NCBI GenBank assembly: GCA_904063045.1
Contig: CAJFCJ010000007.1
Location: 3,541,404 to 3,605,403, forward strand
Direction: 5' to 3'
From: Dimorphilus gyrociliatus
Lineage: Eukaryota > Animalia > Annelida
Length of the DNA: 64,000 nucleotides
The notes beneath the pieces are model-generated. The model had not been told where the DNA came from and did not search any database. It saw only the letters and a list, made by a program, of their open reading frames with translations. Shown in pieces: positions 23,961-57,147 of the stretch (position 1 is the first letter of the stretch; every line of letters begins with the position of its first letter). The translations under genes were made by a program, and so were the position numbers.

Positions 23961-26900
23961 CTAACTCTCCGTTTCGGCCTTTAATCCCTGACTTTTATGG
24001 AGTTCGTAGTAAAGTCCTTTGGCATTCATGAGTTGATGATGAGTGCCAGCTTCGGCAACTGAACCTCTATCGATTACGGCAATTTTATCAGCATTTTGTA
24101 CTGTTGAGAGTCTATGGGCAATTATAATGCAGGTTCTACCCTCTCTGGCCTTGTCAAGAGCATCTTGGACAACCTTTTCGCTCTCTGTGTCTAAAGCTGA
24201 CGTAGCTTCGTCAAGAAGTAATACTGTTTTTTAATGGGATAAAGAACAAAAACCGATTAAGGTACAAAACGCTATGGGAAGATTGATGGTAAACAGACCT
24301 GTTGGCTTTCGGATTAAGGCCCTAGCTATTGCTATTCGTTGTTTTTGGCCACCACTCAATTGGGTTCCTTTCTGACCAACGTTAGTCTCGTATTTTTCCG
24401 GCAACGATTCTATAAAATCGTGGATATTCGCTTGCTTTGCTGCTTCGATAATTAGCTCTTCTGATACATCTTTTTCTGACAATCCGTATTTAATATTCTC
24501 AGCAATAGACCGTCCAAATAGAATGGGCTCTTGCGTGACTATTGCCATTTTTGAGCGGACGTCGGAGACGCTTAGGTTTTTCATATTCTCTCCGTCAATT
24601 GCCTATGACAAGTAATAAAGATTTAGGGTAAATTTTCCTTATACTCATTTATCGTTATTTGATTTATATAAACTCACTATTAATCCTTTCTCTATTTCAT
24701 AAAACCTTTCGAGCAGTACTGTTATAGTTGATTTGCCAGCACCGGAACTGCCAACAAGGGCGATTGTAGTTCCAGGCGATATTTCTAGATTAAAATCTCG
24801 TAGAATTTTACTCTTGCTTCTCATTGGATAAGCAAAATCTATGCCTTTAAATGAGATTGCACCCCTAAAATTTTCCTACGGGTAGAGAGTACAACAACGT
24901 TTCATTAGTATATACAGTATTGTATACTTAGTTTACTTACCAGTTGTTTTCCAGCATTTTCCGAAACACCATCAATTAAGGGCACTCTATCTAACATTCT
25001 AAAGATCTTTTTCGCCGAAGTTTTAGCCTTTTTATATTCTATACTCATACCAGCAGACCTTCCAAGGGATGTTGCGCATACAGTAATTGTTATAGCTACC
25101 CTAAATATATCACCAAATTCTTGATCACCTATTTGAGATTGAAGAAATAAAATATATTGAATAAAAGTGGAAAATGATGATTCTTACCTATTTTAACAAG
25201 GTATGAGCCTATTGCAATAAGTCCACCAAAGCAAAAGTATTGTGCGCTAGTTGAAACTCCGTAAACAATACCAAACATAAGTGCTGTACGTTTCTCTTTT
25301 GTGTAGTCGCTTGTTACACCATCTTTAAATTTCTTTAAGAAATAACGTTCTTGCGATAACATTACTACAGTTTTTATCTGATTTAGAACTTCCGTTGCAA
25401 TCTGATTATATTGGAGAAGAAAAAGAAAAAGTTTGTAATTTTATCAGGGAAGGTGATGAGTACGGAATAGTAATATAATTAACCCTTTTGCAGTATAATT
25501 TAGAGAAGGTAATTAGGGGGAAAAAAACCTATTTTAATTATCTTTACTCACCGATTGAAGAGATTTAACAAAATCTTTCTTATGACGTTTATGCTTTGCA
25601 AAATTTGAACGTGACATGTACGTTTGTAATACGCCGGAAGATAGACTTAATGGTGCAAAAAGAAGAGCGAAAAGCGCTAATCTCCAACTATAATAAAATG
25701 CAATAGAGAGGGCGCACACTACCGTAGATACTGTGTATAGAAGTGTTCGAATATAATCGCCAAGTGCCTGTTCAATAAAATTGTGTTGCTATAAATATTG
25801 GAATTATTCGACCTAAAGACCTACTTTATGAACGTTGCCTGCCTCAGCAGCTAGCAGAGCGGTCAATGCACCAATACTATTGGTTGGTCTGTCGAACCAT
25901 CCAACTTCTTGCCTTAAGATACTCCTAAAAGTTAACTTTCTTAGACGTTCCGTAAGTCTTTCACCAGCAATTCCGAGCAAATAGACCTAAAGAGAATTAA
26001 TTTCATTAACGATCATTAAAACTATTCATTTTTTTACTAACAGCAAGCCAAGTGAACACTCCGTGAAGTAAAGCAATTAGCGCGAAAGCTAATGACAATC
26101 TTAGAGATTGTTCCTTCCTTTCATCCTTATCCAAAGTATCAAAATTCTGTTAATGGGATAATCGTATTAATTTTCGCTAAAACTTCATAATATTATTATC
26201 AATACTTACTGAAATTTGCTGACTAAGAGCAAGTGAGAAAACTGGCATAATGCATCCGTCAACAAGCGAAAAAAATCCTCCAAAACACAAATAGATAATC
26301 TCCGGTGAATTCAATTTCAGAAGTCTTAAAAATAATGATTTTCTCTTTTTTATAACCACTCCTGTATCGGTTTGACTACTATTTTCCGATATTTCCTCTA
26401 TGTCATCTTCGTCATCGGAATCATCAAGCTCTTGTAATTTTACATCATTTTCATGTATCATATCATCGTTAGTTAAATTCGTATCTACTACTGAATGGGT
26501 ATCCAGTTGATTTTTAATCAGTTGAGCGTATGCGCCGTCCTTCTCTAATAGTTCTTCGTGTGTGCCGTATTCGCATACTGAACCTTCATCTACTACATAA
26601 ATTCTATCGGCATTCCTAATAGTTGATAATCTATGAGCTATAACAATAGTTGTTCTATTCTTTGAAGCTCTATCAAGAGCCTCTTGAACAATTGCTTCAC
26701 TTTTGGCGTCTAGTGCCGAAGTTGCCTCGTCGAGGAGGAGAATTTCGGGCTTTCTAATTAAAGCTCTAGCAAGAGCGATTCTCTGTTTTTGACCACCCGA
26801 TAATTGAGTACCACTTTCACCGACCAACGTTTCATAACCATCAGGAAGGTTTGATACAAATTGATGAGCGTTAGCTAATCTTGCCGCTTCGATTATCTCA

Positions 26901-28653
26901 GATTCTGAGGCATCCGGTTTGCCCAGTGCAATATTCTCCATAATTGTTGTAGAAAACAACATAGGTTCCTGGGAAACGATACTTATTTGCTTCCTTAAAG
27001 ATTCAATATTGAGACTCTTAATACTTTTACTATCAATTCTAATATCACCACTTTTAAAGTTGTATAGTTTCATTAAAAGTTGTACAGTTGTACTCTTACC
27101 AGATCCACTTCGACCAACTAGAGCAACGGTTTGCTGAGGTTTAACGTGTATATTGAAATCCTTTAAAATTGGAATATCAGGTCTAGAAGGATATGAGAAA
27201 TGTACACCTTCTATTTCAATATTTCCATTAATATTCGTTAGTTTACTTCCGCTTGGATCGGCGTAATCAATTTCAGTTTCTTGGTCAATAATTTCAAATA
27301 CATTCGCCGCCGCTGCTTGAGCAATGGATATTTGCTGTAGGGATGGTAGACCATTTCCAAGGGCAATTACACCGACTAATATGCCAAATATGGTTGAGAT
27401 CATTTGTCCACCGTCAATAGTTCCATCATCGACCAGTTTATTACCATACCAAAATGGGAAAGCCATTGAACCCAGTGTTATTGTAAATTGTATACCCATG
27501 CCTAAACCGTTAACGAAAGCTTTTCTAATAGCTGTAGTCTTGGCAACAGATAATTTCTCTTCGTATTCATCGGAATGTTTTTTCTCTGCACCGAAAGCGA
27601 AAACAATACGAATTGCTCCAAAAGTTTCCGAAGCAATTGAACCAGCATGTCCATAGGCCTTTAACTCTTTTTGCGACATTTTCTTCATTGTCGACATAAG
27701 GACGACAATACTTGCCGCAATAATCGGAGACATAGCTAATACTATTAAACTCAATCGCCAACTTTGAGTAAAACCAATAACTAAACCGGTAGTAATTTGA
27801 GAAAAGGCTTGTAACAATGAACCAAGTTTGTGACCAACCGCGTCGGAAATTTCATCAATTTCCCTATAAAATAGAATTTATATGTTTATATAAGAAAATT
27901 CTAATAGGAATTAAAAAGAATACCCGAATAGTTTGGATGTAATTTCTCCAGTTTTATTATGATCGTACCATCCTTGATGCATTCTCATTAATTTATCAAA
28001 AGTTGCCATTCTAAGCTTTCTCTTTTGTTTTGCAGAGGTCAATTGCCAGAAGAACATTTGCATAAAACCAAGAAATAAGCATGTACAGGCAATTATCATT
28101 GAATAAGGTACAAGTGTCGTAACGATTTCATCGTGTATATCAAATCCAGAATCCGATGTATAATTAACGAATTTATTAATAGTTTGACTGTAGATAAGTA
28201 CATTTGCTGGAATGGCAACACCAACTGATAAACTTCCAAAAACTGCTAATAATACTAGCAATAGTTCACGACCAGTTAAATAGCGAAACTGCAAAGAGAG
28301 AACAGAGTTCAAAAAGTGTAACTAGTTCCTAGAAAACGGTATTGAAATCACTACATACAAGTTTAAAAAATGATACAGATTTCTTCGTCTTCTCTTTCCT
28401 ATCATCTTCGTTTTCAATTGGTTTATTAACCGAAAAAGATCTGTTTATATTTGAATGGAAAAAAGACAACAATTACATCAATTAAACCAAAGATAGAATT
28501 GATAGAATATATAAGGATAGAAAAGGATATATACACATTTTTAATACATTTAAATGAATCTTATAGATTGAATTTCGTATAGATTCTATATATTGTTCTA
28601 AGAGAAATAATAGAAATATCAATTTTTACGACTTACTTTCTCTTTGACTTCAT
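23961..28653 (-). CDS. ABCB1: Full-length ABCB (MDR/P-glycoprotein) transporter, TMD-NBD-TMD-NBD
   Basis: Two NBDs: GRSGSGKST and GSSGAGKST, both with [10 protein letters not shown] and [11 protein letters not shown]. Two transmembrane halves (GWYD and GWFD motifs) are joined by an acidic linker. Exons can be traced in frame from ATG 28653 to stop 23961. The exact vertebrate paralog cannot be assigned. Confidence 0.92.
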
Positions 28654-33754: not shown

Positions 33755-36700
33755 TTACAAAAATGATTTTTGAGCATTCGGATTTGTGCTTTCCGTTTCC
33801 CAAACTCTTCTTAATTGCGACACGCTAGGCATTGAAAATGTCCGATTAACGTTCTCGTCTGCTTCCTGAACTTCGTCACGATAATTATTATTTATAGTTT
33901 CGTTTATAGGCTTATTATTAATCGGAGGCGCCGGCGCCACCGCAGTTCTATCAACAGTTTTTTGAACTTTGGTGATTTTTTTATCTGTATACTCGTTTGA
34001 CGGATGGACGGGTCTTATCCAGGTTTTTCTATTCTTATTCGTATTGCTATTATTATTGTAATCATTTGACATTTTTTGTTGAGTGTATCGTTTTTGTTCA
34101 ATAACGGCCTTTTCCTCGTCACCATACTTTTTTGATAATTCAGCGTGCCAAGGCCTATCTTTCATTGATCTCTTCAGGGGTTCCGCCTGCTGCTCTGATA
34201 ATAGTTTTTCATAGTATTTTTGTTGAATGATCATTCTCAATTGGCATTCTGACCATCGGCAAGAATCGCTTTTTGATCTGTTTACACCTCGTCCCGATCT
34301 ACAACTTTTACTCTGTACATCGGATTTACTATGTTCTCTCGATATTTCTCGAAATTTACGAGATTTCGTCTTCAAACTTGAATTTGAACTCGATGATGCG
34401 TTTGAAGCCGACCTAGAAACGGATCTAGATTTTCTCTCCCTCATTTCCTTTTCGTAAATTGCGTCACTCTGGGCTTTTAGAGCCCTTGCTCTGTCGCTTC
34501 TTCGTTTCTGTTCTACTCGCAATCGATCTTGTTCTTCTTCCAATACCTTTTGCCTTTTGATTGCTTCGTCGTAGGTTGGAGGCTTTTTAGGCCTTGTTGA
34601 GGTGCTTTCGTCAAAGTTCAGATCTACGGTTGTCAATTTGGCAGTATTCCGTCGATGTAGGGCCAAATCGGCACCGCTACATGTCATACCACGTTTGAGA
34701 AGTATTTTTGGGGGTGGTGATTTTGTTTTAGGGTTTGAACGATTAAATGGTTGAACAATCATAATTTCAGTGGGTGATTCAAGGTCTAAAGCATCCGATC
34801 TCTGTAAATGCGGTTTATCATCGCTAAAACCGGAATCTTCTTTTTGACTTAGCTTTTCCGGTTTTCTCGATCGTCTTGCAGGTTTAATAGGAGCGATTTT
34901 TTGTTCGTCGTCCACACCGCAAGCCATACTCTCGCAAGTTGACAAACCTGAATCTCTAGATAGACTAGACGGTGAAACTGGTGCAGGCCTATTCGTTTCT
35001 AGATCTAAACTATCCAAAGACGCTTCATCCGTTTGTTGTCTGACTAATGATTCTTCCCTTCTGGACGTATCTGGAGTTGTAACATGTATATTAATATTGC
35101 ACGAATTTTCATCTAGTAGATTGACGACGGAAGATCCGAATATATCGGTTGAATATTCAATCAAAGTTTCCACAACGGCGTTCCAATCTAACATTTTCTC
35201 AATTTCTTCCATTGTGGCTAAATCAAACTCAGATCGACTAAGAGACGGCGCAATTGCCGTTGCAACGTTTTTTGTTATCATTTGATTAATATTTGAATTA
35301 TTGCAAACGTGATGAAAGAAACAAATTAAATGTTTGAGAAGGACGGCGTGACCGATGGGAAGGTCATCGACCAATATTTTAAGTTTGTACAATTTCTTTT
35401 CTAAACAAGGCTCTTTGTTCGCTTCTTCCCATTGTCCTCTTTCTTCAGTTGGCACGACGCAAGAGGGCAATTGTTTTAAATACTCTTTGAGAACAGTTAC
35501 AAGAATATGAGTATTCGTTTCCTGTTCCCAATCGACAATTCTCCCTTTATCTAAACATCCAACCAATCTTTTACATTCGCCAACATTTCCGCATTTTCTA
35601 ACAATTCCCTCAGTTTCGGTTCTCTTCGAGAGTTCGTGTAATAGACTATAGATAACGGGATTGAGGATACCGCCCTCATTAACAACTGTTAGCGGTTGAC
35701 CAAACAATTTCCCGCACTTCCTATCTCTAGACTTTGAACGAGACCTTTCCTTTTTGGAATTAGGCGATTGATAACTATCGAACGATCTATCCTCCCTTCC
35801 AAAAATATTCCAAGGTTGTCTAATTAACGATTTCCATTTACGTTTCTTTAATTGTTGTTCTCCGTTTCCGATTAATTTTGAACGACTCTCTGAATGATGA
35901 GAAAAAAATCTTGTTTTAGTCCTATAATTATGACATTGAGCCAATCCGACACGATTAAGTATTTTCGAAACTTTACCCATTCAAGAAAAATATAAGTAAT
36001 ATACAATTCATAAATATTTAACTTATATCATATTTATATTCGGTTTTTTTTAAAATTTAAATCAAATTCTTCTTATGAATCTTTTATTGACCAAAGATTA
36101 GGCCTAGTGTCTTGTTTAATAATATATAATTTCTATCATTCTTTTTCTTACCTCGATGACTCTTCATGATAAATTCAATTTCTTGATTTACATCTACGAT
36201 CCCCGATGACCTTTGTTCGTAGTGTCTTTTTATAGCGAAAGGCCTTTCGTGCCCAATTAAGGGATAGACAACTTTTTCTTCCGCTTTATCGACAACCCAA
36301 AGGGAGTATTGTTCAGGATCTTCAGTGTCCTATTTGAATAAAGGATATAGAGTAAAAAGAAAGTTTGATACACTGCAGGATATATATATCTCATTCGGTA
36401 TACACTATATATATATATATAGCATTTGCACGTGTATATAAGTTAGTTTAGCTAGTTTTATGGGCGTATTGAAGATCTTTTTATGATGAAAAATTATACA
36501 TACATCTCCATATATATACAGTATATATATATATAAGAATATTATGAATATTCATAAAATTATAACTTACCTTTATGTGAAAATGACTTAAACAGCGTTG
36601 AATAACTTGCTGTGCTGTATCCTTAGGCTGAATACTGATTATTCGGCTCTGCAGAACAGAATTCTTTTTCACCAAAGGAATCAAATATATATATACACAC

Positions 36701-42160: not shown

Positions 42161-45100
42161 TTAAGGCCTTTCACTTCTAGGTCTCTTCACCTCAACTGTA
42201 ACACCGTCCATTTCTACTTTTTTACTCTTCTGTTCGCGATCTTCCCCTACAATTCTCTGCTTGTGCTCATCTTCCCATCGTTTCTGTTCCATTCTAACGC
42301 TCTTCTTTTGCTTTTCGGACATTTCTGTCCTTCTCTCGTCCAAAAGATGATTCACAATATCGTATATATCGTCTAATTTAGCGTCTCTTTCGTCAATGTC
42401 TACTTTAGTTAGAGCCATTGCTCGATTAATGGGGAAAAAATCAAAATTACCTCCCGATATCTAATTAAAAAGTGTTTTTAATGACAGAAATTTATTAATT
42501 TAGCGACTTAGAAATCAATTACAAACCTGATTATAAACATATAATTCCGTGTTTGTTAGATCGTTTTCGTCCGTTTCTCTAAGATGTATAAAATAGAATA
42601 TATAGGCCCACAGGTTATGCTCCTCTTTAACGTGATGTTCAAAAGTTGTAGAAGAGTTAGCAAACTCGTAACTCTGTCTACCGCAAATAAAGCAAAATGT
42701 TCTCATGTCTTGTTCCGCTTTCCACTAGTAGAGAAAATTAATTAATCAATTAATTAATTAATTAGACAGTTAGTTTATTGAATACCTTTAAATCCCTTAG
42801 TTCAGAAAATGTGTCGAGTATTATACCAAATATTATATTTAGCCCTATGGTTGTTATGATAATGTGAAAGATAATATGATAAGCGAATGTTGGACCGGCA
42901 GTTTGTATGTTAATTTCATCGGCATGTCTTGGTCTGAGATGTTCAGTTAATTCACCAATAAAACCAAATCTAATTATCGACAGTGTACATTGAGCTAAAT
43001 TTCGGCAGAAAAGATTTATGTCGCTATTTGGACTCATTTGCGATCTTAAGAATGCAAAGGCAACCAATGCAAACATATACATAATAAATATACCCAACAA
43101 GGCAACCAATAGCAGGGATCGACCTAAAGAAAATTAAGTGAATTATATAGGATATATTAATACAAATAACTATAATAACTGTTAAGAATAGATTAAAAAT
43201 AAAATGGCCAACAATGTATGAATGATTAGAAATAAAGGTGTTTCAAGGGGCGGGAGAAAAAGGGGGTGGAATCTTTAGATATTATTATTTATTGTTGTTG
43301 TTATAAATATCCTATTTTTCTTTTAAATCTCCCTATTTTGAAAGGGTGTGGTGTTTTCGTAGAAGTAAAAAAGAGCAAGCTATTATTTACCATTTCTAGT
43401 AACTGCTTCAATAACTCTCTGTAGCAATGGATTCCATAGTACTATATTAACTAGATGAAAGGCGAAAAAATAACCGTAGAATACAGTTCCGCATATTGAA
43501 AATGCCAAAAATGCTGTATAATATACTAGTTTAAAGCTGAATATATCGACTTCTAACAGAGATTGATGGGGTGGTTTCTCTTTTCTGTTATGTAACCTAT
43601 TTGTTAAGACAAAACAAACATTAAAATGATTGTTAAGATAGGAATAAATGTCCATTTTGTATAGTTTAATTACCCAATTTGGTACTTTAATCCGGCTACA
43701 GTTGGTAAACGTATTTGGTTGGATAGAAAGAAGGAGACAAAGACGAGTAAAGATAATAGATTGTGCACTCCTCCTAAAGCGTATATAACTATTTCAACCC
43801 ATTTGTCACGTACAGGAACAGGACTATATAAGTATATTTAATTAATAAAATCACTGATAAAAACTATAAGGTCAAGTATTCAAGTACTACTTACTCTGAT
43901 ATACCAATTGGTAGAGGTAAAGTTGGATCTGTTTCGTCATAGCTATTTCCAAGGAAACCTGCTGCTTTCCAAGTACTCAGCATAATAACGTTAATTATCA
44001 ATGAAACCAGTACACATAATTTATTCCAAACGAACCAGTTATTTATCAAAAAGGATGCAAAAGAAAAAGATTGCATCTTTCGTTGATAATAGATATCGTT
44101 TATTATATCCTTTGACCAATCCATTAACTCCCTGATTTTGTTCGATTGTGTATCTCTATTGATGTTCCATTTCAATTTCTCTTGCACCTCTTCCCTAAGG
44201 ACATTCTGTCAAATAGTAAAGAAAAATAAGGGTATTATTAAATGATAAGATATTTTAATTATAGCTCCAACCCTGTCTTTAACTCGAAATCTCGCTTTCT
44301 GTAAATTATCATCTTTAAGTATCTCAATACTTTCCGATTCTTTTGAATAAACTTGCCAAGCATCTTTCTTATAAGGAATTTGAATTTCCCTTTGAATTGC
44401 TAAACAAAAACATTGTTAAAGTATTAATTCTTCAATAAATATCTGCTAGATGGAATCTTGTTACCTTTAATTCTAAGGATTTCTTCAATTCTTTGAACGA
44501 TAAAGTAATATTTAAATCCGACTTCCAAATGTTCCTCCTTTTCATCCTGAGTCATTTTCTTCTTTTTCACTTTAACCTTACCAACCTCTTCGTCCAGAAT
44601 ACCTTTCTATTTTTTCGGAAAGAACAACACGGTTATTATTAAATATTATAATTCAAAGGTAATGAAAGATACTAACAGATGCTCTATATGAACAAACGGC
44701 GACTACTTCCAGTATCTCTTTATCCAGAGTTTCAGCAATTTCCTAAAAAGTAAGATATATTATACAAGACAAAGATAGAGATAGAGATTTTGAGATTATA
44801 ATCATCGTCTTCTCATTGAAACATACCTTAACTAACTCCTTTGTCGTTTCATGATTCTCTTCAATCATAGACATGATTAACTCTCCAATAATAGTTCTTA
44901 TAGCAATCGTTCTCTTATGGCCAAATTCTTTATATTTACCAGAACGTAATATATGATTTACAAAATCAACTATATTATTCGAATATATTACGTGATGGTT
45001 ATGTTCGTTACCCTATTGAAGTAATTTACGAATAATTGTAATTCATTAACTAATTAATTAATTAATTTATGCAAATATATTTCATTTTTTTTGTTGCTTA

Positions 45101-48100
45101 TTTACCGATGAGAATTCATTTAGGGTTGAGAAACACTGAATAATTAGGTCGATATTATTTTCATCAATAGCCGAATAAAGCATATTTAAAAAACTTGTAG
45201 TTTGAGCAATAAGATTAGCTGATTTAATGTTATCTTCTTGTTCTCTTAAGTAATTCTATTTAAATATTGAATTAATATTTATCATTTTAATATTCAATAA
45301 TGGTATTTTGTTAAAATTAATTAATTACTTGTAAAACTCTATTCTGTCCATCGCACATCCAAGCTAGCACCCTTAGCACCAATTCAATGTGTCCATCGTC
45401 TTTAATTTCAATATTTGTAACCTCACTTATAAGTTCGTGGTCAGCCTGTTCAGCGTCAAGGCTATCTGTATCATTCGTTGGTTTCTAACCAAATCGAATA
45501 AGCGCAAAATTAAAAATTCTCTTTATTCAAATAAATCATTAAATGAATAAATTGTAAAGAGATGTGCAGTGTTTATAGAAGCCAAGCAGTCATTTCAATA
45601 TAGAACAGCCATATTTTAGAAACAGAATTTGTAGATCAATTATTACCCATCTATTCTTTTGATAATCTTCGTCAGAGATTTCAAATATATCTAGAGTAGA
45701 TTGATAGACTTCCGGTTCCTCTATAGGAGCTGGACCAACTTTACTCAATCGTTTTTTTATCGAAGAGAAGCGTATCATTTCGAAATGATTACTTCCTTCG
45801 TTTGTAGTATCATTGCTCTCCCTTAACTTTTTTAGTATTTTAGGAATGAAATAAAGAAAAGATTGTTAATTGAAGCGTTAGATTTACAGTATATTAGTAC
45901 AGCGACTTTTTTAAATAAACTTACAGTCGTAATCTGTGTTTTTTGAAAGAAAATGATAAGTGAAATATACGTTGGAGAAGAGGGGTGGGAAGTGGGAAAA
46001 GGAAGAAGAAGAAGAAGAAGATTATATAACTAATAAAGAGGAAAAAGGCTTTGACATACCCCTGGTAATTCTTTCAGTTTTTGGGTACCCATCTTCAATG
46101 TTGTTGCTGTTTTCTTTTGTTCCCTGAGTTTCTCTTCACATTGGGCAGCCAATAGACGTCTAGATATAAGTTTCGTTAATCACATGTTCGTATGATAACA
46201 CTTAATAATTACCTTTCCCTAATTGTTATCATAGACTTTTGAATTTTATCTTTAATACAAAAAAAGAAAATCTCTTCTCTCGTATTCAAGAAATTATCTT
46301 CAAAAGCTGCTTGAGTAGATGGTGAACCGCTAAACAATAAGACAGATAAAAAGCACAAGTATTCTCTGCTAAGATCTTCATTTGATCTTTCCAAATGTTT
46401 GAGAGTCTTTGTTAAAGCACCTAATTTATTCAATTCATATTGAGTTTTGAAAATAATATCCAATTGATCTTTATGCTTTAATGGATTATCTTTCCAATTC
46501 TCTGGTAATTTTCTCTCTTCATTATGAATAATTCCTCTTAAGATTTGTAGGGCCCTTAAATCTAATCTTTCGATTTCGGGTTGAGACCTTTCCGAAGCTT
46601 TCATTTTATTCGCAGAAATACTGTTTATAATTTAACAATCGGATTAAATAAATTAATTCCCACTAATCCTGATTAATCTCTACACTACTTACAATAAATG
46701 ATCGATGAGCTTTGAAGTTCTTGAAAATTTCAATGACCAATCACTGGTAGAGTTATCAATGAAACAATGAATTAACAACTGAAATTCTTCGCCAAGAGGC
46801 AATTCTTCATCTCCGGCCACGGTAGTGTATTCTAAAGATTATATTAATACAACTTATAGTTATATTAGAAAATAGTAAGACGTAATGGAAAAGAGGATTC
46901 AACCTCTATTGGATGGATAGTCTAGTTGGTTTTCAACAGTGTTCTTTCCTTCCGTTAACTTTTTACAATTTAGAGCAAAAGCGTTTAACAACTTGTTCGT
47001 CTCTTGTTCATCTCTGTAATGTCTTCTATAAAGCTACAAATAGATATTCCGTTTACTTTCGTAATTAATACTTTAGAAAGGATATTATTGAACCTCTCTA
47101 GAGTCGTTTGATGCCATTTGCACTTCATCTACCATTCTTTTGTCCATAAAAGCGGCCAGTTGCTAATGTATAGTTTAATATAATTAATTATAGATAATCT
47201 CTTATTAAAAAGTCAAATTAGTTACTTCATTAGGTGCTTGAGATTTTTCAAAAACTGTTGCCAAACAACTCAATAAAACATCTCTATGATTCTTATTTGA
47301 CAAACAATCGTATATCGCATCGGTAAACTTCTATTTAATTCGTAATAGAGGAGATAAATTATCATTAATTAGAATATTACATGGTATAAAACTAGGTTAA
47401 AAGATAAAAAATAACGAACCAATAGTCCTTGGGTTAACTCATTTACAAGATTTATAGATATTCTCCTCTCAGCCGAGTAGATTTCGGAAAAGTAGATCTA
47501 TTAGTTAAAGTAAAATAAATGAATAAAAGAATTCCTTATAAATTAATAATTTACCTTCAAAAATGTCAGTACACCGTCAAAGAGATAATGACAACTTGCA
47601 TAGGCATAGTTATACTGGGGATCACCACCTTCCGGAAGTGCGCTAATCATTTTATATAAATACTTAGTATCAAAAAAATAATAGTAATAATTATAATAAA
47701 CGAAACAGACATAGAGAATAGCACTTCAAAACAAAATGAAACTAGTTTTATAACTAATTTATGATGTAATACTCATGCATAAAAACAAACAAACAAACAA
47801 TAAAAACTATAGAAAAGAGAGCGTCTTCTATATAGATTTTTATTCTTTTTTAGTGAACTTTAAACCATAAAAAGGCTAAGGTCCAAATTATAAAAGAGTA
47901 TAAGTGAATAAAATACTAATTAATCAAGGTAAAAAAAAGAGGGAATAGGTAAAAAAAAAGATGATAACCCAGTGGAAAAACAAACAAATTCATTTTAAAG
48001 ATAATAATCATAATCATCATAATCATCATCATCGTCGTCATCATCGTCGTCATTATTATTAAGCATAAATCTATAATCTTTATAACATTGACTTGATTGA

Positions 48101-48236
48101 TTTGATTGATTAATTTGATTGATTGATTTGTGGTTTATTTTTGAATAAATTAGACCTACTCTAACTAACCTTGTTAGAACTGCGCTGTTTTATTTTAAGG
48201 GTTTTTTTTTGTTTTTTTAAAAAAAAAATTAGTTTT

Positions 48237-48274
<38 letters not shown>

Positions 48275-51200
48275 TTTGTTTGTTTATATAAATCGAAAAC
48301 AATATGAGAGGATTTAAATGCTAAAGAGGCCTATTTACCTTGTTGATGGCGCCTTCTTTAGTAATTGTTTAGTAGAATTCTTATTAGATGAAACGTATGG
48401 AATAAGTCTTGTCATGGTACTTATAATGCTTCTGAACCATTCTTCTCTGTAGAATTAGATAGAAAATTGGAAATGGAAATAATATTTAAAAGAAAATTAC
48501 ATTTCTCCATCGTAGTCTCCCGAGGCAAATTCAGTTTCCGAGAAGGAACCGCCAGTATTTAGATATGCCCATAGAAGATAACGTACAAATGGTCTTTTTA
48601 AGTTAGTATCCACCTGTTCGTTGGTAACAACTGAAATTAACTCCCTAAATGGTAGGATGGTTTGACATAAGGATTCAATAAAACGGTTTTCTCCTTCACA
48701 ACAGGTGGCTAAAATGTCGACGAGGCTCATTAAATAGCTCAAATGTTGTTTGCCCATCTTTCCCATTAAAATTTGTAACCTTTCAGATTCTTCGTATTTA
48801 TCAAAAACGTAAGCGGCTCTTGAAAATCTTTGATTAAGATACTTGACAACATAATCTTGATTTCTTTTCAAAGGTAAATTCAATTCTTCAATTTTAATGA
48901 TTGCGGATAAAGCGTCTAAATATTCGGCGGCTTTCTCTTGATATTTCGCAGTCAAATCAACTATCTTTTGTATATGTAGTGGGTTGACCTTTAGGCAAGT
49001 AGTTTGATTTCCAACAAAAACTTCAGTAAGTGCCTCTGCAAGTTCCTTTTCGACACCTTTGATACGTAGCATAAAATCTAATCTTTGGAATATGAACGCT
49101 TGACCTTCTTCGTTTCCTTTAATCATAGCCTTTAATAACTTTAGAGCCCATCGGAAAACATCTCTTAAAGCTCCGTGATGATTCTCCTCCATTTGAACGT
49201 TATGTTGTAATATTTTAAGTACAATATCCATTACACCTAAGAGGGAAAGTGTACAATGTGTAATAGGAAATACTTAATTAATAAGAATAGTATGGTTCGA
49301 ACCGTTATTAGCTAAAATAATTTGATTCATAGTGTGGTGTTCTTCACAATCATTGACTAAATGGCACATACTGTTGTAAAAGAGCAAAGGTAAGAAAACA
49401 AAACTATACATTATGTATACATTTTAAACTTACTCGATTAATTGTTTTATTATTGCAACTGACTCGTCGGCCTGTTCATTACTCATCTTTGATCCGGCAT
49501 TCCTTCTTAATTTGGGTAGAATACCATCGATAATCTGATTTATCTGTATCGAATCATCTGTAAGTAAAACTTGAGCTTTTACAGCCTTTTCAAACAGATC
49601 GGCTTTCGCGGTGAAGAATTTGGTTAGCAGATGCATAGATTTTGTAATCATATCATCGTATTCGTACTTGGATAAATCAAGCATTATATCTCTAAAATCT
49701 TCCTTATCAAATACAGTTGTACTCTCCATAATCCTTTCAATCTCTTCCAAAATATCCGCTTTTAGGCTTAAAATGGAATTTACTGTAGTTTGTTAACTTT
49801 TTCAAAGTTCTATTTTAAACTTACTGCTGATCTTTTCTATTAATTCGTTTACTTTCCAACATTGAACTAAGTCTATTAGATTTTTGCTTTTTTAGACGCC
49901 TAAATAAGGCTATAAACTTTTCTAATCGAATGCTAAATTGAAAGGTTAGAAGAACGTCTACAACGTCCATTGCCGCTAATTTTGCTTGAACAATAGCATT
50001 CGTTTGAGCGCAAGGTTTATATCTCTCTTGCTTTTGATAGGCAAGTTTAGCTTCTTTATCTTTACCAACTATTGAATTAAATATAGGGTTAGAAAGTTAA
50101 TTAATGAATTCTAAGAATTTTCCATCACACCTGATTTAGGTGGACGATCATTTGTACCATCCATAAGGTCCATTAAACCCTCCCTTAACTTTTTTATGTC
50201 GCTAGCATCGTAAAATCCAAATTTTATTAAGTATTTAACAAGCTCCAAAACCTTTTTGAACGAAATAAAAAGTATCTATTTACTATTGATTTTAATAGAA
50301 GTATTAAATCCGTACCTGTTCAATGAGATTATTGCCACCAATATCGTCGAATGACATGCTACCATGTTCCTTAAGGAAACTCGCAATCCATCCTTGAAGA
50401 GATTGAATAATCTGTCTTTCATTATCCGATAGTCTTTCCAACTAAATTTAAATATTTATAAATAGATATAAAGTCTTATTAAGTAATGTTAACTTACGTT
50501 ATCCAGGTATTTCTTCATAATATCAGCACTATCGGAGACAACTTCATTGTAGACAAAAGTTAGTTTTGTTTGTTCAACAACCGAAGTATTATTGCCAACA
50601 TCGACAAATAACTTAATAATAAGATTGCAGTATTTCGCCCGAAGTTCAGCAGGCATTGCGGGATCTGTAAGACAAACGAAAGCCTCCTCCCAAGTTAGGA
50701 AGCGTCTTGATTTCGTTATAACTTCAATAGCGTGATGATTTCTTCCTTCGCACAATTTACCGAATAGTTCCAATTGTTTCTCAAGAAACATGTATTGATT
50801 ACTATCGTGAGTTACCTAGATAGAATAGATAGGAATAGTTGTAATAAGTAATAAATTAAATCTAACCTTAACAAAATCGGATAATTTCACCCAATCTTTA
50901 GCTTCACCAGTTTTCACGTAGACGATATTCTCGTTCTTCTTACTTGGTATATTAGTGGCAAGTTCTGTAAGAAATACGCCATCTTCGTTTTGAAGCCATT
51001 GATCTACAATAAATGATTGGTTTTCCGGAAGTGGAATACCATCACAAACGCTAATAACATTAAGATATTCAAGATAACGATAATTCTTAGTTGCTTGAAC
51101 TTTGTCAACAATTTCGCAAATCGTCTCTTTTGATATCCTCTCAACAATCTTTCTATTATCTCGAATTAGTTCGGCAATCATATCTAATGCATTATTACTT

Positions 51201-51992
51201 ATATTTCTATCGATTTGTCCATTTTCCAAATTTTCAAAGAACATTATATATTTAGCGAAATACAATTCATTCTTTCTACTATCGCCCTTTAAATAGTAGA
51301 GGAGAACTTCTAACATGGAACTCAAAACATCATTTATCTTCTTTTCATTAATCCTATATAAATGAATGAAGGTTGGTTTAAAAATCATTTGGAAAAAGTA
51401 TACAATCAAATCCAAAAGGTGTAAATTTCTCATTAATTTTTGTCTCTTTTTATCGGGAAGAGCGTTAACAATCATAAAATTTTTCATTTGAATAAGCGTC
51501 TAAAAGAGACAATTGAAATAATTAAAAAAAAATTCAAATAGACGCCTTTACTTTATTCGCCTTACCTGTTTTATATCATAAATTATAGCTACTGGAATAT
51601 TGGTTTGTGGATGCTGAGAAATCTATAATAAATTCATTATAGATATTGTAATGAATATTCAAATATTCAAAAAACCGTTTCAATGAAGGAAATTAAAACT
51701 GGGGCAAAACCACTGGCAATGTTAAAATCCTTTTTAGATGAATCAGAAACTTTTTGAAGAGTGAATGCGTCATCGTCCATTCTGACTTGCTCTACTCCCA
51801 ACTGTATAATAACAACAGTATTTCTTTTCATTCCTTCTTAACTAGAAACATATGACAAACTTCAAACTTACCTTTCTTAGATCGGCTCCGTCCCATTGTA
51901 ATTTACCTATTTCGTCTACAGCTAGTTTATCTTCGGGTTTGATAAATTTATCTATTTATAGAATAACGTTGTTAATATACAATAAATAATAA

Positions 51993-52027
<35 letters not shown>

Positions 52028-54189
52028 ATTGTACAGTATATAAAGGTTAATTACCTTTAAGAGCGTGTAACCACTTCCCAGAAACAGCATGTTTTATCCT
52101 AGCGTAGCTTTCAAATTCCGCTTCGTCCTTTTCCTGTATTATTAGAGGGGAGAGTAGTTTCATTAGTCGTAAACAATAGCTCTTCGTCTATATACCTGAG
52201 TAACCGGATAAAGAATAAAGACTGTTGAAGGAGTTGGAGATGGAACTAGAATCAATCCATTAAATAAATTATCCAAAGCCAAGTACATTTTCGTTGGTAG
52301 ATGACGGAATCTTATTGAATGTTCCCAAAGAATTTCACTGCCTATAATAATTGCATAAGTGTAATTATAGCGTCTCTGTATTTTGTTCTTTCTCTCCCCC
52401 TCTCTCTCTTCCCTAATTTATTCTCATACCGTATTGTAAGCCATTCTTGTGTTCAACTTGCCAATAAGTTATAGCCGATGTTGACGGAAACATTGTCTTT
52501 GGTTTGCTATTATCGATTGGCCTTAGTCTCATATGAACTTGAAGAAGAAGAAGAAGAAGGGTTTTTATAAAACTAATTCGAATATTCAATTATTCAATTA
52601 ATTAATTAATTACCCTGGTCAGGCTTCGAACCAGGAATAGGATTCATGTACAATCCATCGGAAACGACGTATGCTTCTAACTCTTTATGGAATAATCTCA
52701 CAAGGGAACCACCCTTATAAAAAAAAAAGGAATTCAGTTTTGACTGCAATTAAGATAAGATAATAAAGTTAATTTACCGTAATAACCGAAGAATTATTAT
52801 CGGAAGGTCGTTTAAATAAACCAATTACAAAACCGGTTTTACTCACTCCCAGATTAATTTCGCAACTGAGAAAAAAAAGATCATTTGGATAGAAAGAAGG
52901 AAAAAATAATTATAAAATGAATGAAATTTTAATATTCAAGTGAAAAATTTGAATAAATTATAAATACATTTTTGATCTGATAAAAGTATCTTGAAAAGCT
53001 GTGCTAGCGTGTAAAAATTGACCAGGAGATTTAACACTCTCCAATAAAACTTGATCAGAATCTTGTATAAGATCACCTTCGGATTTAACTTTAAATCTTG
53101 GCAAAATTTTAAATTGGGCATGTTTGTCATCAAAACCATATAACATTACCTATGGAAAAGAAGGGAGAATTATTGAAATTATTCAGAATGCATTATAATT
53201 AATTATCTATATATAATTAGTAAAATTAATAAGTTAGTTTACGAAAATGAGGGTCAAAATTATCAAATAAGCTGTTTTTTTGTTTTTTACGTACTTGCAT
53301 ACAATTTTTATCCCTTAAACTTGTTTTCGAGGTACTAATATGAACATAATTGTCGGTAAATATATGTTTTAACTGTATTATCTGCCCATATCTCAAACGC
53401 TGTCCATGAGCTCTCTGCTTTTCCTTTTCGTTATCTCTAGTCTCTGATAAGGCATCCGATCTTAATTTCTCAATGCTAACACCATCAGCCAATCTTTTCT
53501 TGCTCGACTGGGTTTGTCTATAGATTTTGTTTAGTTTGTATCGGTTTCTAGGACATATTTCGAACGTTATCGCTACAAAAGAAAAACATAGTAAACTTTA
53601 TTTTTATATTAAATATTGATATTTAAATCTCTAAATAATTAAGGCCTATATAAGAGGTTGAAGTAACTTTTACGACTTAAATAGACATCTTTCAATATAC
53701 TGCCATTTTTATCCGCGTTGGGTGTATTTACATTAGCCTATTGCCTATGTTGTTCATTCCGAGTATACCTTCGCCACAGGCATTCACCTATTTAATGAAT
53801 GAATAAGGGCAGGAAGAAATTATAATATTTCTCTTTTATAGGCCTATTTAGATAAACTAAGACTTTTACTATAAATACATTCTAGTTGTTCAATAAACGA
53901 ATATTGTTTCAATATTTTGAAATATAAATAAATTATGATGAAATTTTTACCTTGAGAATCGGGTATATCTTTAATATCGATGTAATCTTCCTTCTTTTGT
54001 TGATAGAACGTTTGAAGAGAATTATGAGCATTGCTTTATTTTTTATTAAAACAAACAAAACAGTTTTATAAATGAAACTCTAAGTAGTGATAGTTAAAAT
54101 GTATACCTGGAGGAAAAATTGAAGACGAAACCTGACCTATCCTCGCAAAAGAGATGAACAATATCCCCGTAACAAATATAACGAGCCAT
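42161..54189 (-). CDS. ITPR: Inositol 1,4,5-trisphosphate receptor-family Ca2+ channel, divergent; many exons
   Basis: N-terminal YICYGDIVHLF, LRYGQIIQLKH, FKILPRFKVKSEGD, GGSLVRLFH and RFRHLPT (trefoil/MIR domains); RQKLMR; RIH/armadillo blocks; a six-TM region; TTIGLNIIFGIILDTFSELR; the CFICG...HVKEEHNLW zinc finger; and a coiled-coil tail. I traced the N-terminal exons and several internal ones, but not every junction. Confidence 0.93.
48003..48130. repeat. Compound intronic repeat: (TCA/TCG)n followed by (TTGA)n
   Basis: Direct reading within an ITPR intron. Confidence 0.75.
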
Positions 54190-55583
54190 TTCTTTAGATT
54201 AAATAGATTAAACGAGCCAATCCTCTAAAGCTATCAACCGACCTGTGTATAAGTGATATATTTTCCTAATATTTATTTAGGGTGGTTGATAGAATGAGAC
54301 TCTAGATCTATACATAGAACTCTTTAAAAGAGTATAAGATAGTTTACAGCGTACAACTCTTTTGATTCATTAAATTCTACTAAATATATTCGATATTTCT
54401 ATATAAAATAGGACTATATAAGTCATTATCTATTATAATAATCAATGCTTTTTTTAGCTCTTAAAAAGATTTACTTAATACACTCTTCTTTTAACAGATA
54501 AGGATATAAGACAATAAATCAAAGATTCCTTTACCTCGCTTTATAGTTTTCTTCTATTTTATTACTGTTTAATAGATCAATTCATCTACTATCAGGAAAT
54601 ATTCTGCAATTATTAAAAATGATTCAAATTACACGATGTAATTTTAATATATTAGATATACTGTATATATATATATACAGTATATATATTAATATATAAT
54701 ATTGATTTTTTTCTATTCTTCTCTATATCTTTCCATATTCCTTCTAGTAAAGTTTGTTAGAATACGATTAAAGACGGTTGAAAAAAGTTCAAACTAATAA
54801 ATGCTATTTTCATTTTTACGTATAGAATTATATAAATATGTTAAACGTAGTTAGATACTTACCAGAAACTCGTTGGAAAGTGACAAAAGTAGAGAAAAAT
54901 AATAAAAAAATAGTTGCCAACCTAAGCCGAAAAGTTTTAAGGCCTAGGAACTAACACTATTCAGCAAATTCCTCTATATAGTAGAACTTCTATTATTATC
55001 ATTCGAATAAATAGGCCTAACGAAAAGATTCATAGTAAGTTTCACATACTTTAAGAAATAGTTATAAAGGGTAGCTTGAGATTTTTCCTACATTTTCTTT
55101 TAGTAATAGAAAGAAACATTTTCGAATAGTTCTTTATCTACTTTTAGTTCCCCTCCCACCCTTCCTTATGTATCTTTATATATCAACATTTAGAGGGCCT
55201 TTCATACCTCTTCTTTCATTTATTAAGAATGCAAAATTCATATTTATATTAGTTTATATACTATAAAGTAGCTCTAATGGAATTTTTTTCACTTTGTAAT
55301 ATAGAATATAATTCATCATTTTAACCTATACAAAAGCTCAAACGAGCAATATTTCTTTATCGGATAGTTCCTTTGGTCAGCTCCACCTGGAAGTAATGGA
55401 AGCGACTACATCTTCTTACATGTATACTGTATATATATATATATATTTAACGTCTGTACCTTGCATTCATTTCCGTGAATTTATCCTGTATTGTACTCAT
55501 AAAGGTTATACAAGTGACAGCTGGTCTAAAGAAGGATAATTTAGGAATTGTATGAGGAAATTTATGAATGATTTCCGTCTATC

Positions 55584-57147
55584 ATGAGTATTTTAAATGA
55601 AATTCGACGCTTTGGCGTTGAAATTGTTAGCTTTATATATTTTTTCTCATGGCATTTAATTTATACATCTTCACAAACTTATTTAAATACTGTAACTGGA
55701 GATCTACAAGAAATTAACGCCTGCAAAAGTAATTTAACGTCAAAGGAAATATATCATAAGGAGAGGGATACGGTTATTCTTTCTATGAAATTATCCTTAG
55801 CGGAACTTTTGCCAGTTATTCCCGTGACAATTTTCTTTGCGATTAGAAGTGATTTAGATAAAAGGAGAAGACTACTGATTTGGCTACCTTTTGTTGGTAA
55901 CGCTCTATTTTGTTTCTTCTATATCATACACTTCTACCAACGAAAGTATCTGTTCCTTCTCTACTTTGGTAATCTTTGTATGGCCTTTTGCGGTCATATG
56001 TATATGTTCCAGGCGGGCGTTCATTCGAGAATAGGAGATCATTTTCAATCGAATCAGAGGCTACTTCAAATGGCTACTCAAGAATCTTTTATCCAATTGG
56101 CAATGGGTCTAGGTATATTGGTTGGTGGAATATGGGATCAATACCTTGGTTTTCTTAGTTCATACTTTATTGGACTAGTCATATCTTCAATTGCAGTTCC
56201 TCTCACTTTTCTTCTAGTTGTAGAAGACAAACTTAACACGGAAAATTCCTACGAAGAGATTGATGTGAAATCGTGGAGACATATCTTTTGCGAAGCTAGA
56301 TATTGGCTAATATTCTTAAGTTTTCAGTTATTTATATTTGTTCACAACGGAGAAGAAAGAATACGTATACTCTATTTTAAGAATAAACCGCTTTGTTTCA
56401 CTTCTCTAACCATTGGGCTAACATGCTTTGTACTAGGCCTAGTTGCCTCAATTGGTACAGTAGGTAGTGTCTATATATTTTCAAGGATGGGTTTAAAGCC
56501 ACTTTGGATAGGAGTTGTTGGATTTGGATCAAAAATTGTTGGTAGTATATTTTTAGCTGTAGCAAACAGTCTAGCGTTAGCCATGCTAGGTAAGAAAGTT
56601 TGTCCATTCAAAGATAACGATTGTTCATCCTTCCAATTTCTTTTCATTCAAACACAGCTCAAGTAACAATGATCTTCTACGCAGTTCCATTTTCAGTTGC
56701 TAGATCATTTATATCGGAAATAGCTGGTGAAGGAAAACAAGGTAAAAACAGAAACGATTTAACGATTTACTAAATGGAATAGAAAGAATTTAAAACTCTT
56801 TGATGTTTATATATCTTTTTTATTGTTATATATAGGAGTTGCACAAGCGATTTTGCATAGTGGTTTAGCGATTAATGCCGCAATAGAGCCACCTATACTT
56901 GATTCAATATATGCGGCTACTTTAGATACCGTTTATGGAATGACGTTTTATTGCTGTGCAATAGTACTAATCGTATCAGCTGTATTATTGATGTAAGATT
57001 TGATTTTATTACCATTTTGAATATTCAATAGATTTCATTTTCTTCTTTCTTTTTAGAATTGGCGATAAGATGCAAAAGTTTAATAGATCTTGCTACAATG
57101 AAGAAAGTATTCCACTAGATGGCGATAAAGTTGATCAAAATGTTTAA
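55584..57147 (+). CDS. MFS transporter, SLC46 (PCFT/HCP1)-like. Exons approx. 55584-56588, 56659-56741, 56837-56992, 57057-57147
   Basis: About 12 hydrophobic segments. The first loop carries a Cys (NACKS), and the motifs RSDLDKRRRLLIWLPFVG and RSFISEIAGEGKQG are present, with YFKNKPLCF after TM7. The C-terminus is a polar tail. Confidence 0.75.

Follow-up and report, generated by a model that had tools for sequence, protein, structure and literature searches.

The window, a 64,000-nucleotide stretch of the genome of the annelid Dimorphilus gyrociliatus, contains a gene for an intracellular channel of the IP3R/RyR type that is a member of the IP3R-B subfamily. Its altered ligand-binding pocket, which the original prediction called half-eroded, is a known hallmark of this already named and little-studied subfamily, and the gene itself is an ordinary member: the substitutions represent the IP3R-B consensus, and at five loop positions they are common to the other seven B-type paralogues of the same genome. 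The best explanation overall, which we consider rather probable, is an intact IP3R-B channel with a conserved B-type pocket that would serve as a site for an anion other than IP3.

The gene and the parts of its ligand-binding region are located as follows (positions in the window; residues of the deduced protein, with equivalents in ITPR1 numbering; basis of each assignment in parentheses).

42209..54244, minus strand: multi-exon IP3R-B-type channel gene, ATG at 54189 (Pfam, colinearity, spliced contigs)
52614..52712, minus strand: exon E6, GSLVRLFHKELEAYVV..., upstream boundary possibly one base further right (splice joints, translation)
52430..52537, minus strand: exon E7, beta-trefoil ligand loop, (V)HMRLRPIDNSKPKTMFPSTSAITYWQVE (translation, splice joints)
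52515..52529, minus strand: R275-L276-R277-P278-I279, equivalent to R265-T266-T267-G268-R269 of ITPR1 (profile alignment, codons, family counts)
52497..52511, minus strand: N281-K285, an insertion of about five residues that ITPR1 lacks (profile alignment, family counts)
about 51566..52341, minus strand: exons E8-E12, the rest of the linker from beta-trefoil-2 to ARM1 (splice joints, translations): E8 52196-52341, E9 52055-52133, E10 51872-51951, E11 51676-51801, E12 51566-51622
50867..51499, minus strand: exon E13, first armadillo/RIH segment with both alpha-side motifs (Pfam, PDB alignment, splicing)
51428-51457, minus strand: PDKKRQKLMR, residues 485-494, in E13 (translation)
51428..51451, minus strand: K487...K491..R494, equivalent to R504, K508 and R511, with R489 equivalent to R506 (PDB and profile alignments, codons)
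51269-51286, minus strand: GDSRKN, residues 542-547, in E13 (translation)
51272..51280, minus strand: S544-R545-K546, equivalent to Y567-R568-K569 (PDB and profile alignments, codons)

The single exons match Pfam domains in the order Ins145_P3_rec, MIR (with matches below Pfam's cut-off), RIH (1.8e-21 in exon E13), a second RIH and a C-terminal Ion_trans, and the gene is colinear with the long open reading frames of its paralogue C6 down to the C-terminus at 42209, over about 12 kb. The gene is intact and transcribed. Contigs from two public runs, X1 and X2, were aligned to positions 50400-54300; a 4302-nt contig of run X2 has all 14 introns of this region spliced out, and three contigs of RNA run X1, a coral metatranscriptome, have several of them removed. 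All joints read CT..AC on the plus strand, that is, GT..AG for a minus-strand gene, and with exons taken from the spliced contigs the reading frame stays open from the ATG at 54189 through E14. Within this frame V272, preceding HMR, is encoded by a split codon (G from E6 and TT from E7), and E6 contributes R244, the retained equivalent of R241, and A252, at the place of the lost K249. The peptides quoted in the original prediction, including VHMRLRPIDNSKPKTMFPSTSAITYWQVE in E7, are all present on the minus strand where it had put them.

Several side observations concern the gene and its surroundings. The contigs of run X1 are 95-100% identical to it over window positions 50400-53574, and the sampled coral therefore seems to have harbored a worm resembling Dimorphilus. 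The intron between E9 and E10 contains a (TA)n microsatellite at 51980-52035, and several of the remaining introns hold TC/GA-rich tracts. Neighboring genes encode an ABC-B (P-glycoprotein-like) transporter (25000-28320, minus strand), a large RhoGAP-type protein with a 741-aa exon (33758-35980, minus strand), and a multi-pass membrane protein with a 360-aa open reading frame (55584-56666, plus strand).

Assignment to IP3R-B rests on several agreeing lines. An exhaustive search with exon E13 against a 50% library yielded 215 relatives, the best at 45% identity. The closest are B-type proteins, among them those of Patella, Elysia, Macrostomum, Saccoglossus, and Capsaspora; the named relatives include molluscs (Patella, Elysia, Pomacea, and Sinanodonta), other bilaterians (Macrostomum, Tubulanus, Intoshia, Plectus, and Saccoglossus), and, beyond Bilateria, Trichoplax, three choanoflagellates, and Capsaspora (CAOG_04510). 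In a maximum-likelihood tree of the E13 region (78 rows), the window protein falls into a 98/87 clade of spiralian B-type proteins, nested in a 45-row B clade that also contains Capsaspora and the choanoflagellates (88/84); deep support is moderate because the tree rests on this single exon. The A-type sequences that bear RTTGR form a separate clade (100/99), and RyR is an outlier. Clade placement, domain order and size, pocket signature, and the presence of separate IP3R-A and RyR genes all coincide with what characterizes IP3R-B, from which the window gene does not differ at the pocket. The subfamily has an IP3R-like size of about 2,400-2,600 aa. Ryanodine receptors belong to the same superfamily and share the N-terminal fold with IP3R-B, but they lack the basic pocket residues, are about twice as long (about 5,000 aa), and carry SPRY and RyR repeats; the length of the window gene, the preference of the B-type profile for ITPR1 over RyR2, and the separate RyR gene of this genome all speak against such an identity. 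Neither does the window gene carry the 11 contact residues of canonical IP3R-A. We know of no report of IP3 binding for either RyR or IP3R-B.

The IP3R-B subfamily is that of Alzayady et al. (2015, Mol Biol Evol 32:2236). The bilaterian ancestor possessed IP3R-B, which was lost in vertebrates, Drosophila, and C. elegans (PMC7992859), and the same paper on the leech Helobdella gives the function of IP3RB as undetermined; our literature search on IP3R-B function found nothing beyond it. In the nematode Plectus sambesii, a B-type protein (UniRef A0A914XA54) carries the complete pocket signature, and therefore the loss of IP3R-B within nematodes is not ancestral. According to later papers citing Alzayady 2015, IP3R-B could not bind IP3, as reported for the Capsaspora protein (PMC9113742), and is the sister lineage of RyR (PMC9113742, PMC7016017).

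The residues of the pocket were compared with those of solved IP3 receptors by searches with the exons one by one. Exon E13 matched human ITPR3 in PDB (E about 9e-7), aligning PDKKRQKLMR with PNRERQKLMR and GDSRKN with EDYRKN. The loop exon E7, searched alone, gave no match in PDB or Pfam; it is too short and divergent, and therefore a family profile was needed. The profile, built from an alignment of 22 B-type relatives (A1), matched mouse ITPR1 with an E-value of 5.9e-90 (305 bits) and RyR2 with 131 bits. The 22 proteins come from organisms as far apart as Capsaspora, choanoflagellates, molluscs, a hemichordate, and a nematode. The resulting equivalences, with counts over the 22 B-type rows where a site was scored, are given below.

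ITPR1 R265: R in the family (R in 20/22)
ITPR1 T266: hydrophobic
ITPR1 T267: R (R in 19/22)
ITPR1 G268: variable
ITPR1 R269: V or I
After ITPR1 S271: insertion of five residues
ITPR1 R504: K (K in 16/22, R in 5/22)
ITPR1 R506: R in 20/22
ITPR1 K508: K (K in 22/22)
ITPR1 R511: R (R in 21/22)
ITPR1 Y567: S (S in 20/22)
ITPR1 R568: R (R in 17/22)
ITPR1 K569: K (K in 22/22)

The original prediction had stated that the R265 equivalent is kept while T267 becomes R and R269 becomes I, and the profile alignment agrees, at a HMMER posterior of about 0.4-0.5 at 267-269, where the register is the best one rather than a certain one because these sites adjoin the indel. None of the registers brings back T-T-G-R at its canonical positions. 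On the armadillo side, the predicted retention of K508, R511, R568, and K569 and the changes of R504 to K and Y567 to S are confirmed by both the PDB and the profile alignments.

In IP3R-A, IP3 is coordinated by R265, T266, T267, G268, R269, R504, K508, R511, Y567, R568, and K569, among which R265, K508, and R511 are the most critical in ITPR1 by mutagenesis. Five of these 11 contacts are identical in the window gene, one is conservatively changed (R504K), and five are replaced. Canonical IP3R-A proteins (vertebrate ITPR1-3; PDB entries 1N4K, 3UJ0, 5GUG, and 6DQJ) share with the window gene R241, R265, R506, K508, R511, R568, and K569, and Lys stands in for R504, whereas T266, T267, G268, R269, K249, and Y567 are replaced and five residues are inserted after the loop. 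The original prediction had left out T266 to L, G268 to P, K249 to A, and the insertion. The pocket nevertheless contains seven basic residues (R275, R277, K487, K491, R494, R545, and K546), the same count as in ITPR1, and in B-type pockets the basic charge at 269 has in effect been shifted to 267. The original description of a pocket still basic yet remodeled therefore holds, with the beta-trefoil side changed and the armadillo side kept.

The pocket substitutions, whose conservation across orthologs had been proposed as a check, proved to be conserved among the 22 B-type proteins from Capsaspora onward. The B consensus can be written as R-hydrophobic-R-x-hydrophobic followed by the five-residue insertion, K-x3-K-x2-R, and S-R-K, and the window gene has the consensus residue or class at all 11 IP3-contact sites. 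The insertion itself has a pattern, with Pro in 16 of the 22 proteins, then K, R, or H in 17. Capsaspora CAOG_04510 carries the same residue or class at every pocket site. Mean column identity in alignment A1 is 35%, and only 11 of the 487 columns scored in the N-terminal region are invariant; these include the equivalents of K508 and K569, the R511 equivalent is among the top 21 columns, and R265, R506, and S567 are among the top 40. In the RyR of the same genome, by an hmmsearch alignment that is weak but recognizable, D and Q take the places of K508 and R511, and E and N those of R568 and K569. The invariance of K508 and K569, together with their loss in this RyR, argues that the pocket is selected, and the conservation pattern shows strong purifying selection on both its armadillo and its beta-trefoil halves.

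The 77.9-Mb genome encodes one canonical IP3R-A, which was absent from the account given in the original prediction, one RyR, and at least eight IP3R-B-type genes.

C20:1267-1275k: canonical IP3R-A gene with RTTGR and QSYRKN
C19:3703-3715k: RyR gene
C7:3590-3596k (the window gene), C3:2849k, C1:606k, C6:3656k, C2:3760k, C8:924k, C23:617k, and C7:1540k: B-type genes

In the table of sites obtained by tblastn, the A-type loop is off by two residues and RyR is not alignable there, so the A-type loop sites were read directly and those of RyR were taken from hmmsearch. All eight B-type paralogues have the VH-x-R-x-R... loop with its YWQ[VI]E ending and R-hydrophobic-R at the positions of 265-267. 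G-x-S-[RK]-[KQ]-N is found in seven of the eight, the exception being the second C7 gene; likewise seven can be aligned at the armadillo positions, all with the equivalents of K508, R511, and S567 in place, while one of these paralogues has G at R504 and Q at K569 and another has K at R568. Compared with two B genes in the leech Helobdella (ip3rb1/2, PMC7992859), this lineage, with its eight or more, looks like a case of lineage-specific IP3R-B expansion.

Individual members of this set show features of their own. The paralogue on C6 (L017/L011, C6:3649800-3658100, minus strand) has hardly any introns, its open frames measuring 576, 1108, and 837 aa, in contrast to the 14 introns in the first 2.1 kb of coding sequence of the window gene, which suggests massive intron loss or origin as a retro-copy. 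The most divergent paralogue (L023, C7:1535500-1545499, minus strand) has the loop VHLRVRECDMFDSKSLYQSTRCFSYWQIE and the motif PYHRKAQKLLRE and is devoid of the S-R-K-N motif; it consists of many short exons with in-frame stops nearby and may be degenerating. In the IP3R-A of this genome (L022:3857-4489, C20), all 11 IP3 contacts are canonical, and the sequence RERPKLLRE has Pro at ITPR1 Q507.

The structure of the region was modeled with AF2 on the N-terminal open reading frame of paralogue C6 (L017:2021-3628, minus strand, 536 aa), with A1 as the alignment; this protein, 39% identical to the window gene in E13, stands in for the window protein. The model has a mean pLDDT of 81. In it the strand stops at the T266 equivalent and is followed by a confident loop and a short helix formed from the insertion. 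Foldseek, which compares global similarity only, ranked IP3R1 and IP3R3 best (TM 0.67-0.69) and RyRs next (0.63-0.66), with about 21-23% identity to IP3R in the structural alignment. The model thus shows a predicted ligand-binding core with the IP3R fold.

Three other readings of the altered pocket were weighed. A decaying IP3R copy, its pocket eroding after duplication, might be suspected from the long branch of the window E13 (1.11) and from the scope for relaxed selection that eight paralogues provide. Such decay is hardly credible: identity to the three closest paralogues (C3, C6, and C1) is 51-67% for the loop exon, compared with 39-48% for E13, and all 11 sites represent an ancient family consensus. 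Together with the frame intact over 14 exons and the spliced transcripts, this consensus contradicts the view that the window gene is a pseudogene or is being eroded. The rearranged pocket could, on the other hand, belong to a low-affinity receptor that binds IP3 weakly or with an altered isomer preference and keeps the channel IP3-gated. All seven basic residues, including the equivalents of R265, K508, and R511, would fit this, as would a family profile nearer to ITPR1 than to RyR; yet the P4 cradle (T266, T267, G268, and R269) and Y567 are replaced throughout the family, a canonical IP3R-A is present in the same genome, and PMC9113742, citing Alzayady 2015, describes IP3R-B as not binding IP3, all of which makes IP3 gating of the window channel quite unlikely in our judgment.

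We also judge it unlikely, if worth keeping in mind, that no small ligand is involved and that the basic residues form an intramolecular clamp or contact a partner protein, with gating by Ca2+ or protein as in RyR. The sister relationship of IP3R-B to RyR (Alzayady 2015, as cited in PMC9113742 and PMC7016017), the cell-type-restricted leech ip3rb2 (PMC7992859), and the fact that no ligand is known for IP3R-B are in keeping with it. RyR, however, needs no such ligand and has lost the equivalents of K508, R511, R568, and K569, whereas IP3R-B has held them for roughly a billion years, and the only role known for these residues in IP3R-A is to contact the ligand. Conservation of the contacts, transfer of the charge from 269 to 267, and the loss in RyR argue together for a retained ligand site.

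We therefore return to an intact IP3R-B channel with a site for another anion. The armadillo half of the pocket is kept and the beta-trefoil half rearranged, and the conservation of the B signature from Capsaspora to worm leads us to infer that the cleft is a still working anion-binding site under selection. The cradle for the P4 phosphate (T266, T267, G268, R269, and Y567) is missing from the B-type cleft, so that canonical IP3 affinity is probably absent and IP3 binding of that strength by the window channel appears unlikely. The original suggestion of weak or no IP3 binding, or of another anionic ligand, is a fair inference from the sequence and accords with PMC9113742, citing Alzayady 2015. 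The candidate ligand may be a different anionic molecule, phosphorylated or polyanionic, which we regard as quite possible, if somewhat short of an even chance. Such a ligand would close the clamp between beta-trefoil and ARM, as IP3 does in IP3R-A, and ordinary IP3 signaling would be left to the canonical IP3R-A gene elsewhere in the genome. More tentatively, and with some doubt on our part, the IP3R-B cleft could be a dedicated receptor site for an anionic messenger other than IP3; candidates include inositol pyrophosphates, inositol phosphates other than IP3, the head groups of phosphoinositides, and messengers derived from nucleotides.

The conservation of the former IP3 contacts, which rank near the top among B-family residues, sharpens the question of what gates IP3R-B, and the conserved pocket positions suggest a handful of targets for mutagenesis. 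With one IP3R-A, one RyR, and eight IP3R-B genes in 78 Mb, this worm would be a compact system for addressing IP3R-B gating. If the cleft is indeed a dedicated messenger site, IP3R-B would constitute a third ligand class of ER Ca2+-release channel, and the eight-gene expansion in a miniature worm could reflect a diversified, cell-type-specific use of these channels.
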